NCBI GenBank assembly: GCA_965240325.2
Contig: OZ251227.1
Location: forward strand, 3,038,001-3,102,000
Direction: 5' to 3'
DNA: 64,000 nt
Source: Rebecca billardiae RCC1528
Lineage: Eukaryota > Protista > Haptophyta
This document shows, one piece after another, positions 39,027-42,959 of this stretch. Numbering within the stretch: the first letter of the stretch is position 1; each line of letters begins with the position of its first letter. The translations under genes were made by a program, and so were the position numbers. The notes below the pieces were generated by a model. The model did no database searches. It was not told the origin of the DNA and worked only from the letters and a program-made list of their open reading frames with translations.

Positions 39027-42000
39027 CTAAGCCACGCTGCTGCTCCAGTGCCGACGGCGAGAGGCGCGCATCACGACCAGCGCAGCCGCCGCCGCCGAAA
39101 GCGCCACAAGCGCGAACACGGCCGCACCAATGGCCATCGCAGCCGGCAGTGCCGACATGGACTGCTCGGCAGACGATGCGGCGGGGCCGCCAACCCTGGA
39201 CTGCAACGGCGTGCCGGCCGAAAGCTCGGGGCCATCTTGGAGGTCGCTGTCCCACAGCGAGGCGAGAGCGCGGCCCTGCGGGCGGGTCTTGACCAGGAAC
39301 CGCGTGGCGGATGCGACGATCTGCGCACGCCGCGCGCGGGGCCGGCAGCGCGCGGTGGCCGGCGGCAGGGCTTGTCAGTGCGCGCAGAGTTGCGGTGGCG
39401 CGCGGCGCGTCGGCGCGCAGTGCGGCAGAGCGAGCGCCATCGCACGCGCACGGTGCGCTGGACGGCGCCTTGGCGTCGCCCCGCCGGGTACGCAGTGCGC
39501 ACCGAGTAGAAGCACAAGGCCCTGCACATTTTTAGAGGCGGCGGCATCGGCGGGGGTGACTGCGGCGGCGGACTCTGCTGAGGCGGCAGTGGCGGCGGCG
39601 ATGGCGGCGACGGAGATGGTGGCGATGGCGGTGGTGCGTCTGGGAGCGTCGACGGTGACACGGCAGGAAAGCCGTGCGTGCCGCCCGGGTGCCACATCTG
39701 CGTCTCGCCGACACTCCTGCGAGCGTCGATGGTACCAAAGCGCGATGATGGGGAGAGGGCACCGCCGTGCACGTGGCAGCGTTAGCGGCGGGCACAGCAA
39801 GCGTGGCGCGGCGTCGGATCGCCAGGAGCACGCTGGGACCGGCCCATCACGCGCAAGTGCCACCGCCCCTGGCCCTTGCCGCGCGTACATGAGTGTCAGA
39901 GCCGGCAGGAGGAGGATCTCCGTGGGAACGGTGCCAGAGAACGAGTTGTCAGACAAAAACCTGCGCAGCGAGCAGCGTGCACAAACGCGTAGCACACGAG
40001 CAGGCAGTCAGTCAGGCTCGGCAGGGCGTGCGCCGCCACGCTGTGCGCCAGCGTGGCTGGCTAGAATGTCGCACGACCACCCCTGGCTGGCAGTGGGCGC
40101 GCGTACGTGACGATCAGAGCCGTCATGAGGCCGATCTCTGTTGGAACGGTGCCAGTGAACGTGTTGTTGTACACAAACCTGCGCAGCGAGCAGCGTACGC
40201 AAACACAGAGCACACGAGCGGGCAGTCAGACTTGGCAGGGCGTGCGCCGCAGCCCTGTGCGCCAGCGTGGCTGGCGCGAATGTGTCGATCGCACCGCCAC
40301 CACAACGGATCGCCAGTGGCCGCGCGCACAGTTGCTGCAGAGCTGTCATGAGGCCGATCTCCGTTGGAAGGGTGCCAGCAAACTTGTTTTCGTACACATA
40401 CCTGCGCAGCGAGGAGCGTGCGCAAACGCATAGCACACGAGCGGGCGGTCAGACTCGGCAGGGCGTGCGCAGCCGACTATGCGCGCCAGCGTGGCTGGCG
40501 AGAATGTCGCACAACCACCCCTGACTGGCCCTGGCCGCGCGTACATGTACTCCAGAGCCGTCAGGAGGCCGGTCTCTGTTGGAAGGGTGCCCGCGTGCGA
40601 GCCGGCATGCAGACGGCTGCGCAGCGAGTCGCGCGCGCGCGACGCGCACGGGCGGCGGGCGATCAGGCTCGGCAGGGCGTGCACAGCAGCGCTGTGCGCC
40701 AGCGTGACCGGCGAGAAGGTCGCATAGCCACCACTGGCTGGCCCTAGCCGCGCGTACATGGCGGTCAGAGCCGTCATGAGGCCGATCTCCTTGGGAAGGG
40801 TGCCATCGAACGAGTTCCGGTACGTCTGCCTGCGCAGCGAGTGGCGTGCGCAAACACAGAGCACACGACGAGCGGGCACTCAGGCTCGGCAGGGCGTGCG
40901 CCGCGCTGTGCGCTCGCGCGGCTGACGAGAATACGGTATCGCGCAGCCACCCCTGGCTGGCCCTGGCCGTACGTACATGTACTCCATAGCCGTCAGGACG
41001 CCGATCTCCGTTGGGAGGGTGCCCCTGAGCGAGTTGTCATGTGTGAGTCTGCACAGCGAGTGGCGAGGGAATGCATTGCGCGCGAGCGGGCGGTCAGGCC
41101 AGGGCGGTGAGTCAGGCTCGGCAGGACGTGCGCAGCGCTGTGCGCTAGAGTGGCTGGCGATAAAATGTCGCACCACCACCACGACACGCCTGGCTGGCAG
41201 GCTGCGCGCACAGTTGCGTCAGAGCTGTCATGAGGCCGATCTGCGTTGGAAGGGTGCCAGTGAGCGAGTTTTCGTACACATCCCTGCGTAGCGAGTAGCG
41301 TGCGCAAATGCATAGCACGTGAGCGGGCGGTCAGGCTCGGCAGGGCGTGCGCAGCGCTGTGCGCTCGCGTGATGGCTGGAGAGAATTCAGAATACGTCGC
41401 ACCACCATCACCCGGGCCCAGTGGCAGCGCACGCACATGAGCTGCAGCGTCGTCACGCCGCCTAGCTCCGTTGGAAGGGTGCCCGAGAGCACGTTGGTGT
41501 GCAGAGTCCTGCGCAGCAAGTGGTATGCGAACGCATTTCACGCGAGCGTGCGATCAGGCTTGGCAGGGCGTGCGCCACGACGCCGTGAATGCGTCCGAGT
41601 AGATCACTCGATGGCGAGAATGTCGCGCTACCACCCCTGGCTGGCCCTGATGGCGGCCTGGCCGCGCATACATTTGCTGCTGCAGAGACGTGAGGAGGCC
41701 GATCTCCGTTGGAAGGGTGCCCGAGAACGAGTTCCGGTACCCAAGTCTGTGCAGAGAGAGGCGTTTTTGCAAACGCATGGATGGCAGTGGCACACGAGCG
41801 GGCGGTCAGTCAGGCTCTGGCTGGGCTGGAGGGCGTGCGCCGCCGCGGCGGCCGCGCTGTGCGCCAGCGTGGCTGGCGATAATGTCGCACAGCCACCCCT
41901 GGCTGGCCCTGGGCGCGCGCACAGTTGCTGCAGATCCGTCAGGAGGCCGATCTCCGTTGGAACGGTGCCAGAGTACAAGTTCTCGTGCACAGATCTGCGC

Positions 42001-42959
42001 AGCGAGAAGAAGCATGCGCAACGCATAGCACACGAGCGGGCGGTCAGGCTGGGCAGGGCGTGCGCCACCACGCTCTGCGCCCATATCGATGGCGAGAATG
42101 CGATGGCGAGAATGTCGCACTTCCACCAGCCCTGGCTGGCCCTGGCGGCATGGCTGGCCGCGCATGTACATACATGTTCTGCAGAGATGTGAGGAGGCCG
42201 ACCTCCGTTGGAAGAGTGCCGTTGAGCCTGTTTCGCTCCAGAGCCCTGTGTGGCGAGTGGCGTGCGAGCGCAGTGCGCAGGCAAGGGCGGGTGAGCCGCG
42301 TCCGCGCACGCCCCGCGTTCCTCTCAGCTGCCTACTGCCAGGCGACTGCACGACTGCGTGCACACGCGCACGGCGCGCGCACTGCTCTGGCTCCTCCTCC
42401 AGTAGTCCTCAGGTCGGGTGGTCGCGGAGGAGACGTGTAGTTTGGCGCGGGTGCCAGTGCAATCGCGGCTGCATGCACGCTGGCTGGCCAGCTGGTTGAC
42501 CCCGCGCGCGCCGCGCCGTGCGCGTACAGTTCGGTGAGGGGGCCAAGCAGACCGACTTCGGTTGGGATCGTGCCCGTGTAGCCTGACAGGCTCACCTGCG
42601 CACGTGCGAGCCGCGAGTCGCACATGGTGGGCAAGGGGGGCGTGCGGCGAGCGCGTCATCGCTCCTCACGGCAACGCATGGCGATTGCAGTCGCATGCCT
42701 GTGCGGCATGGCCGCTCGCCGGCTCGCGCGCCACGAGCCAAGGTTGGCCGCGCCGTCGCGATGGGCGGCCGCGGGCCTCGCGCATCGCGACAGCCGACGC
42801 GCACACCCGGATGCCTGTGCACGCAAAATCGTGGCCGAGGCACTCTGTGTACTCGGTGCTAGACTCGAAATTGATGCCAGCCGCGCCGGACGCCAGCAGG
42901 CTTATCACGAGCGCGACGCCCTTGGCATGCAGCAGGCCGGTCGTCACGCTGGTGGGCAT
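39027..42959 (-). CDS. LRR receptor-like protein (signal peptide, 12 plant-type LRRs at one per exon, Pro-rich stalk, TM, short tail), 15 exons, ~507 aa
   Basis: Exons: 42959-42807, 42595-42528, 42245-42174, 41994-41923, 41746-41672, 41508-41437, 41283-41212, 41048-40977, 40829-40758, 40616-40545, 40401-40330, 40178-40107, 39960-39889, 39716-39503, 39320-39027. All introns are GT-AG and the frame is continuous with no stops. LRR consensus xxxxNxxxGTLPTEIGLLTALxxL. TM segment AMAIGAAVFALVALSAAAAALVVM followed by RASRRR. Confidence 0.88.

Follow-up and report, generated by a model that had tools for sequence, protein, structure and literature searches.

The locus analyzed here raises the question of whether a run of exons that each encode a single leucine-rich repeat (LRR) is part of a shuffling system that makes variable receptors, or whether it belongs to a complete gene that grew by duplication. 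A preliminary description had leaned toward the former, reading the locus as a diversifiable cell-surface recognition receptor. We consider it likely that the gene is complete in the germline, is probably spliced constitutively and encodes a type-I membrane LRR receptor-like protein, with an array that arose by duplication and then diverged. All coordinates refer to the window, which is the whole 64-kb stretch of DNA that was analyzed. The predicted spliced model has 15 exons between 42959 and 39027 on the minus strand and encodes 507 amino acids in a 1524-nt frame that is open throughout, with all 28 predicted splice sites canonical. Its parts are the following.

42807-42959, minus strand: exon 1, 153 nt (51 aa), with the start codon, a signal-peptide-like hydrophobic stretch and a Cys-x6-Cys N-terminal cap, ending in phase 0
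42596-42806, minus strand: intron 1, 211 nt, phase 0, donor GTGTGC, acceptor GCGCAG, without kinship to the repeated introns
42528-42595, minus strand: exon 2, encoding LRR1, 68 nt, starting in phase 0 and ending in phase 2
42246-42527, minus strand: intron 2, 282 nt, of unique sequence, containing GGGCGTGCGC
39889-42245, minus strand: the cassette array, eleven LRR exons, all phase 2-2, and the ten mutually homologous introns between them
42245-42174, minus strand: cassette exon 1, 72 nt
41994-41923, minus strand: cassette exon 2, 72 nt
41746-41672, minus strand: cassette exon 3, 75 nt
41508-41437, minus strand: cassette exon 4, 72 nt
41283-41212, minus strand: cassette exon 5, 72 nt
41048-40977, minus strand: cassette exon 6, 72 nt
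40829-40758, minus strand: cassette exon 7, 72 nt
40616-40545, minus strand: cassette exon 8, 72 nt
40401-40330, minus strand: cassette exon 9, 72 nt
40178-40107, minus strand: cassette exon 10, 72 nt
39960-39889, minus strand: cassette exon 11, 72 nt
39717-39888, minus strand: intron 13, 172 nt, phase 2, with weak kinship to the repeated introns at most
39503-39716, minus strand: exon 14, 214 nt, with a short post-LRR part, a proline-rich stalk with SPP/SPPP runs, then Cys-x3-Cys
39321-39502, minus strand: intron 14, 182 nt, phase 0
39027-39320, minus strand: exon 15, 294 nt including the stop, with a juxtamembrane part, one transmembrane (TM) helix and a basic tail of 13 aa

An in-frame ATG upstream at 43046 offers an alternative start for exon 1. 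The donor of exon 14 (TCG before the cut and GTGCGC after it, phase 0) was picked by frame and consensus, and this exon 14/15 junction, together with the start codon, is where the gene model is least secure. A run search with the locus itself listed no sequencing run, and a search with a neighboring helicase gene found three runs of one sample, whose kind is not recorded, in which the share of sampled words did not exceed 0.14. Mapped on 38900-43100, these runs left two short pieces across exons 14-15, no joints and nothing on the LRR exons.

The exon structure drawn in the preliminary description was recovered. Ten of the eleven consecutive one-LRR exons are 72 nt and one is 75 nt, each encodes one 24-residue LRR, and the span given for them, 42595-39889, extends from the start of the LRR1 exon to the end of the last LRR exon on the minus strand. 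The LRR1 exon was missed by a DNA profile built from the 11 cassette exons and is therefore more diverged. Each cassette exon is bordered by AG/GT, with (C/T)(A/G)CAG before it and GT(A/G)(C/T)G(C/T) after it, and all 22 array splice sites follow the canonical pattern and resemble one another. The last two bases are AT in seven exons, CT in three and AC in one, and the first base of the next exon fills the junction codon, so every flanking intron is in phase 2. In every unit, the junction codon lies at the first hydrophobic position of xxLxLxx, and it reads Leu, Ile or Met, with Thr as the single exception. As the exons are symmetric (phase 2-2), skipping, duplicating or swapping any of them preserves the frame, as had been claimed. 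Stop-free splicing also returned the octapeptides reported earlier (ALERNRLN, SVHENLYS, LGYRNSFS, TLHTNVLS, DVYENSLT, LTHDNSLR, QTYRNSFD, RLHAGSHA, YVYENKFA, FVYNNTFT and FLSDNSFS). In register, the exons start with xLxxNxL and end with LxxL; within GT(L/V)P, the G, T and P are invariant among repeats, and conservation reaches 90% or more at T17, E18, G20 and L25 (alignment numbering).

The protein predicted from this model starts with a hydrophobic stretch (residues 5-23, Kyte-Doolittle 1.65 in a 19-aa window) followed by small residues. The proline-rich stalk in exon 14 is 57% Pro across 42 aa, and the first listed 19-aa window of the TM helix covers residues 464-482 (Kyte-Doolittle 1.9), after which come the basic 13-aa tail and the stop, so that a short tail without a kinase follows a single TM helix. 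Because the N-terminus resembles a signal peptide and a TM helix lies near the C-terminus, a cell-surface LRR protein, as proposed earlier, is the natural reading of the predicted gene. The exon/intron anatomy, the open frame, the intron homology described below and the rate contrast are shown here, and we infer surface location, splicing, and ligand binding. The twelve tandem 24-residue repeats fit the plant-specific class LxxLxLxxNxLxGxIPxxLGxLxx, and BLASTP aligned some 300 residues of the LRR region with database proteins (40-50% identity, E about 1e-80) in which Pfam recognizes LRR_1, LRR_8 and LRR_14. The homology query was a 12-row profile of single-exon translations, with a ranking driven mostly by repeat number, and the ten matches that were looked up were eight metagenomic proteins, one from Flavobacterium and one from a diatom (Seminavis). 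In the Seminavis homologue, the entire LRR domain lies within one exon; the cassette layout is thus not general for this LRR subtype in stramenopiles. Viral contigs scanned with the LRR profile gave no match, and an exact look-up of the open reading frames of the window in public assemblies found none on record.

Outside the repeats, Pfam found no family in exon 1 at E up to 1, and no LRRNT_2 cap, leaving the Cys-x6-Cys pair as its only such feature; exons 14-15 had no significant family, kinase or ROC-COR domain. Single LRR exons also gave no Pfam match, as expected for lone LRRs. The lack of a Pfam match in the non-LRR exons could suggest that there is no working gene here, but a tandem repeat in decay or a stretch that was modelled wrongly. 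We regard this as extremely unlikely, as the 1524-nt frame is open over 15 exons with 28 canonical splice sites, the scaffold positions bear the mark of purifying selection, and the cassette exons have been spared frame-breaking indels, with a lone in-frame +3, while the introns are full of indels. Exons free of frame-breaking indels, next to homologous introns of 141-179 nt, also support the receptor-gene reading.

The ten repeated introns are homologous to one another, with many indels between them. It is confirmed that the array is a repeat far beyond chance: Tandem Repeats Finder reports a period of 223, 6.9 copies and a score of 1084, the intron and exon profiles match every unit in the 64-kb window with E 1e-17 to 1e-39, and intron homology alone reaches E 1e-28 to 1e-39. 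Near-invariant blocks, such as GCGCACGCCCTGCC, and a CTGAC branch-point-like motif are found inside these introns and would fit introns with a function of their own (a structured RNA, a splicing regulator or a small RNA) or a mobile "introner" family. Compensatory covariation was absent from the repeated introns, with a covariation term of +0.72 kcal/mol, and a conserved RNA structure was rejected on this ground; synonymous-rate divergence and frequent indels also argue against a function. For an introner family, the intron position is a difficulty, being identical in every unit, which points to duplication and not to independent insertion, and no copies of the introns were found outside this gene in the 64-kb window. 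A metagenome scan with the best-conserved intron block gave 12 single matches, which we attribute to chance because none extends beyond the 20-mer and none is near LRR exons. Taken together, functional or mobile introns are very improbable.

Duplicated introns that have survived give the locus its own neutral yardstick. Taking a star-like history, the consensus as ancestor and independent sites as assumptions, differences from consensus per site were 0.131 in introns and 0.136 at all synonymous sites, and since these values match, the repeated introns look neutral. Under the same assumptions, non-synonymous difference was 0.414 per site at variable LRR positions, ~3 times that of introns (Fisher p about 2e-20 versus intron), and 0.063 per site at scaffold positions, about half that of introns. 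On this sequence comparison, the scaffold positions are under purifying selection, and we infer that selection caused the rate contrast. The claim of a variable 5′ part on a fixed backbone is borne out by mean pairwise differences of 0.47 (nt 1-25) and 0.16 (nt 26-61), compared with 0.22 in introns. The variable residues occupy concave-face (22, 23, 1, 3, 4), core (2) and loop (6, 8) positions. An excess of non-synonymous change, for which a check had been suggested, was thus seen at variable LRR positions, between repeats of one protein. Variability among repeats of one protein, which is what was measured here, is a trait of every LRR protein.

A possible but doubtful alternative is concerted evolution, in which the array is old, the introns and the exon core were homogenised by conversion or unequal exchange, and the variable segment escaped and came near saturation without adaptive diversification. 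It would account for the flat divergence with distance along the array, the star-like pattern, and the finding that two introns, those preceding cassette exons 9 and 11, are nearest to all other repeated introns. It would also explain why cassette exons 5 and 9 differ by 0.12 and their flanking introns by 0.21-0.24, and why, among codons 1-8, divergence at third positions (0.33) and synonymous change within variable codons (0.25-0.42, on few sites) are raised relative to introns (0.13-0.22). However, divergence in these codons is higher at position 1 (0.60) and position 2 (0.46) than at position 3, which is not what neutral saturation predicts, and the near equality of intron and synonymous differences is what a simple shared age predicts. 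Intron homogenisation is weak at best because indels are many.

Whether the cassettes are actually shuffled was addressed within the window. The preliminary description had suggested a search for orphan exon units, and an nhmmer scan of the 64-kb window in both orientations with an exon profile matched the 11 coding exons and nothing else; intronic, inverted, reverse-strand or decayed LRR exons were not found there, and there is no sign of cassette shuffling in the 64-kb window. Active diversification, with cassettes combinatorially spliced or recombined between loci through their homologous introns to yield a receptor repertoire, as has been proposed for brown-algal ROCO genes, would agree with the phase 2-2 exons and their junction codons (Leu, Ile or Met with one exception), with homologous introns that could act as recombination substrates, with the fast divergence of the variable positions, and with a precedent in Ectocarpus that includes splice variants (PMC11378527, PMC3341825). 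Intron 2 could even carry a docking site, as GGGCGTGCGC provides a 10-nt complement to the best-conserved block in 8 of the 10 repeated introns. Among random 282-nt segments drawn from the window, 1.9% reach that count, with four introns tested, and the docking-site-like pairing of unique and repeated introns, although present, is within chance. The uniformity of the array splice sites, the absence of orphan, inverted or inactivated exons and of stray introns from the 64-kb window, the absence of the intron family from the metagenome scan, and the report of rice LRR-kinase genes with the same structure (PMC3050792) also speak against active diversification, which we consider unlikely. What stands of the diversifiable surface receptor is the surface reading, the frame-safe cassettes and the fast variable positions, while "diversifiable" and "shuffle-ready" describe potential only.

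In a broader version, single-LRR cassettes would form a family spread over the genome, with introns homogenised locus by locus, and loci like this one would make variable receptors by regulated exon skipping, possibly guided by pairing of a unique site in intron 2 with the conserved block of each repeated intron, or by frequent recombination among cassettes. This version is decidedly improbable; if true, either route would give a unicellular organism its own splice-based equivalent of the diversification seen in Dscam or VLRs.

In the reading that we favor, a duplicated and diverged receptor-like gene, the protein would consist of a signal peptide, a Cys cap, 12 plant-specific-type LRRs, a Pro-rich stalk, a TM helix and a short basic tail, with no kinase or other signaling domain predicted. 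LRR2-12 would have arisen through successive tandem duplications of a unit of ~223 bp, one 72-nt exon plus one intron, as the introns are homologous and have diverged at the synonymous rate. After duplication, the copied introns would have drifted at that rate while purifying selection held the scaffold residues, and the variable, mainly binding-face residues would then have diverged at ~3 times the intron rate. Via its concave LRR face, which the proline-rich stalk would hold off the membrane, the protein may bind a ligand or surface outside the cell, and signaling or adhesion would probably go through a partner, by analogy with plant receptor-like proteins (RLPs). The phase-2 exons and homologous introns would also allow repeats to be easily gained or lost over evolution by unequal crossing-over.

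One repeat per exon is not a new layout: plants, brown algae, ciliates and vertebrate hormone receptors have it as well. Land-plant LRR-kinases with single-LRR exons include the SERK-type genes. What this locus adds is one more GC-rich eukaryote, apparently an alga, with LRR domains built from 72-nt phase-2 cassettes, which here serve a predicted membrane-anchored, kinase-less surface protein. A new diversification mechanism is not shown by the locus alone. With its neutral yardstick, the gene lends itself to research on the evolution of recognition surfaces in phytoplankton, such as those involved when hosts meet viruses or bacteria.

Among the systems compared, lamprey VLRs share an LRR binding surface that is diversified module by module, but their incomplete germline gene is completed by somatic assembly from cassettes on its flanks. 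The analogy drawn in the preliminary description fails because the germline gene here is complete, so that the defining feature of VLRs is missing, and no spare cassettes lie in the 64-kb window. Vertebrate glycoprotein-hormone receptor/LGR genes have similar-sized LRR-domain exons that each match roughly one LRR, and their introns are all in phase 2 (as cited in PMC11378527). Unlike the gene described here, they join the LRRs to a 7-TM receptor, and their exons are old and constitutively spliced, with mutually unrelated introns. Tetrahymena LRR genes contain tandem 90-bp exons with an extreme phase-2 bias, a shared junction codon and clonal exon-plus-intron expansion (PMC6564038). Equal-length tandem LRR exons, phase 2 and expansion of an exon-plus-intron unit are thus common to both, whereas the exon length (90 bp versus 72/75 nt), the LRR class, the thousands of genes and the link to a retrotransposon set Tetrahymena apart (PMC6564038).

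The brown algae Ectocarpus and Saccharina have ROCO, LRR-kinase and LRR-only loci with tandem arrays of 72-nt phase-2 one-LRR exons, for which diversifying selection on the concave face has been reported (PMC3341825, PMC11378527). In Ectocarpus, the shuffling claim rests on intronic, reverse-strand or inactivated LRR exons, and splice variants are also described (PMC3341825, PMC11378527). The cassettes described here agree with the brown-algal ones in length, phase and one LRR per exon, and their register is that of the "type II" exons, not of the heavily shuffled "type I" exons that start with GxxPxxL. In contrast to this locus, brown-algal ROCO genes have a ROC-COR GTPase downstream of the LRRs, and brown-algal loci have intronic, inverted and inactivated exons, none of which occur in this 64-kb window.

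In overall architecture, the predicted protein is similar to plant RLPs (CLV2, TMM, Cf-9), which have a signal peptide (putative here) and, like it, an ectodomain of GxIPxxIGxL-type LRRs, a TM helix and a short tail; unlike it, RLPs have a Pfam LRRNT_2 cap, which was not detected in exon 1. LRR-extensins (LRX) likewise join LRRs to an SPn proline-rich region but have no TM anchor. The likeness to RLPs and LRX would be one of architecture only, and sequence kinship is claimed for the LRR consensus alone. Group 5 LRR-kinases of rice have 72-nt one-LRR exons with a phase-2 intron that splits the first Leu of xxLxLxx, and no cassette splicing is reported for them in that study (PMC3050792). They share with this locus the 72-nt exon, the plant-specific-type LRR and the position and phase of the intron (PMC3050792), and differ in having a cytoplasmic kinase domain, whereas this gene ends in a TM helix and a 13-aa tail, and in belonging to another lineage. 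As the introns described here are still mutually homologous, the expansion of this array is recent.

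The LRR cassette gene lies on the minus strand, in a very GC-rich part of the window (62-66%), and three-frame reading of the flanks of its LRR array gave a complete predicted model in which 15 exons, together 1524 nt, encode 507 aa without an internal stop. The predicted splice sites are canonical and mutually similar throughout, and the main parts of the model are as follows.

42959-42807, minus strand: exon 1, hydrophobic N-terminus and Cys-x6-Cys cap, joined to LRR1 in phase 0
42595-42528, minus strand: LRR1 exon, 68 nt by exact parsing
42245-39889, minus strand: eleven cassette exons after LRR1 (LRR2-LRR12), 72 nt each except one of 75 nt (41746-41672), by exact parsing
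39716-39503, minus strand: exon 14, after LRR12, a stalk rich in proline (57% across 42 residues) that includes SPP/SPPP runs
39320-39027, minus strand: exon 15, juxtamembrane stretch followed by a single, strongly hydrophobic helix and a basic tail of 13 residues

Hydropathy found only two hydrophobic segments in the predicted protein, one at residues 5-23 and one from 464-482, and from this layout it is predicted to be a kinase-less LRR receptor-like protein of the type-I membrane class. Three lines of evidence identify the repeats as LRRs: the consensus, a profile search that gave 29,854 proteins (E up to 0.001), and BLASTP, in which the model matched the best of these proteins, which Pfam scores as LRR_1, LRR_8 and LRR_14, at 40-50% identity across some 300 residues (E about 1e-80). 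Pfam gave no match on the gene's own non-LRR exons or on its LRRs taken singly.

Tandem Repeats Finder detected a 223-bp period at 39870-41371 (score 1084), and reading the minus strand for the conserved GGCAC...CC.AC core located twelve LRR units. At the predicted junctions, (C/T)(A/G)CAG precedes each LRR exon and GT(A/G)(C/T)G(C/T) follows it, and since each LRR exon stops two bases into a codon, the predicted array introns are in phase 2. The cassette exons end in AT (7/11), CT (3/11) or AC (1/11), so the junction codon is Leu, Ile or Met except for one Thr. The preliminary description of eleven 72-nt exons (one of 75 nt) with one LRR each, phase-2 introns, these exon ends and a Leu/Ile/Met junction codon in almost any combination was accurate in every detail, and translating the predicted spliced frame, which is open, reproduced its LRR peptides exactly. 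At residue 3, cassette exons 2-9 (41994-40330) alternate strictly between His and Tyr, beginning with His, and so build a ladder of aromatic and imidazole side chains along the predicted concave face; no two-unit super-repeat was evident from DNA distances.

From LRR2 to LRR12, the ten intervening introns, 141-179 nt long, are plainly homologous to one another (E 1e-28 to 1e-39 with an intron profile), and the introns flanking the array are not homologous to them. It follows that an exon was repeated together with an intron, and that tandem duplication of this unit of ~223 bp gave rise to the array. Divergence between units does not increase with distance along the array, giving a star-like pattern. 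The repeated introns carry many indels, whereas the cassette exons carry a single in-frame +3, and RNAalifold found no compensatory covariation in these introns (covariation term +0.72 kcal/mol).

Rates among the repeats of one protein (not among alleles or cells); per-site rates take the consensus as the star-tree ancestor
Introns: mean pairwise difference 0.22 (bootstrap 0.19-0.26); 0.131 differences per site from consensus
Exon nt 1-25 (variable part): mean pairwise difference 0.47 (0.36-0.55)
Exon nt 26-61 (core): mean pairwise difference 0.16
Exon nt 62-72 (tail): mean pairwise difference 0.39
All synonymous sites: 0.136 differences per site from consensus
Non-synonymous, eight variable positions (1, 2, 3, 4, 6, 8, 22, 23): 0.414 per site, 3.2 times the intron rate (Fisher p about 2e-20; comparison and test treat sites and lineages as independent, which they are not)
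Non-synonymous, scaffold positions: 0.063 per site, 0.48 times the intron rate

By these per-site rates, the introns behave like neutral sequence that is as old as the exons. The LRR scaffold positions appear to be under purifying selection, and the variable positions, for the most part residues of the binding face and of neighbouring loops, appear to have changed faster than neutral under the star-tree assumption. Within exon codons 1-8, divergence is higher at the first and second codon positions (0.60 and 0.46) than at the third (0.33). Synonymous change within the variable codons is likewise raised, albeit over few sites, and for that reason an older array with patchy gene conversion could also have produced the rate contrast.

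Nothing here demonstrates shuffling or alternative splicing of the gene. Orphan exon-intron units, which the preliminary description had proposed to look for, were not found outside the array: exon and intron profiles, run on both strands of the 64-kb window, matched the eleven coding exons and ten introns only, with no orphan, inverted or decayed copies, which in Ectocarpus are the evidence for shuffling (PMC3341825). The repeated-intron family, probed with its best-conserved block, was also absent from a metagenome scan. Intron 2, which is unique, carries a 10-nt site, GGGCGTGCGC (RNA sense, within 42295-42317), that is the exact complement of GCGCACGCCC, which lies in that block in 8/10 repeated introns. 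This recalls a docking site and is a candidate lead only, because 282-nt segments drawn at random from the window reach the same complementarity in 1.9% of cases and four introns were tested. Intron 14 carries a 9-mer, GGCGTGCGC, at its 3′ end, shortly before the acceptor at 39321. Of the proposed diversifiable surface receptor, the predicted modular surface LRR protein and its fast-evolving variable positions hold up, but no diversification mechanism was shown.

A TIR_2 domain (E 1.6e-14) is encoded by a long ORF (30708-35336, minus strand), which lies head-to-head with an RNI-type LRR ORF (34979-36535, plus strand) that has an 84-nt tandem period at 36076-36280; both sit 2.5-8 kb from the cassette gene and suggest an immune-like neighbourhood. 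The AT-rich region directly upstream of the gene start holds a ~92-nt direct repeat (43100-43191 and 43343-43436; spacing 243-245 bp; first 63 nt 100% identical, next 31 nt 87%) that may act as a promoter element or represent a small mobile one. Further upstream, the intergenic region contains an inverted repeat of 31 nt (90% complementary, with a loop of 83 nt) as well as a palindromic, AT-rich microsatellite, at 43851-43995 and 44958-45029. AT-rich islands at 38500-39000 and 43000-45200 mark the intergenic regions around the gene, and GC is 44-56% in the first 4 kb of the window (1-4000) against 60-82% elsewhere. At 15527-17620 (plus strand) lies an intronless ORF of 697 aa for an SF2 helicase with ResIII and Helicase_C domains. 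Its nearest language-model clusters come from bacteria (Bacteroidota) and phages, and it may have entered this eukaryotic contig by gene transfer or belong to a mobile element.

The analogy drawn earlier with lamprey VLRs fails in its defining feature, as the germline cassette gene is complete. Closer parallels exist. Brown-algal ROCO genes and other LRR loci are reported to encode one LRR per 72-nt phase-2 exon, and the register of the Rebecca exons is that of their 'type II', in which no shuffling has been seen (PMC3341825; PMC11378527). In rice LRR-kinase genes, single LRRs are reported on exons of 72 nt, with a phase-2 intron that interrupts the first Leu of xxLxLxx (PMC3050792), a position that exactly matches the introns of the Rebecca cassette exons. 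In Tetrahymena, exon+intron units have expanded clonally into thousands of phase-2 arrays of 90-bp LRR exons (PMC6564038), and phase-2 LRR exons in vertebrate gonadotropin receptors are mentioned as a citation within PMC11378527. A homologue in the diatom Seminavis holds its entire LRR domain within a single exon; the cassette layout therefore belongs to particular lineages and is not universal. Taken together, the predicted one-LRR-per-exon layout of the Rebecca gene belongs to an already known kind of gene.
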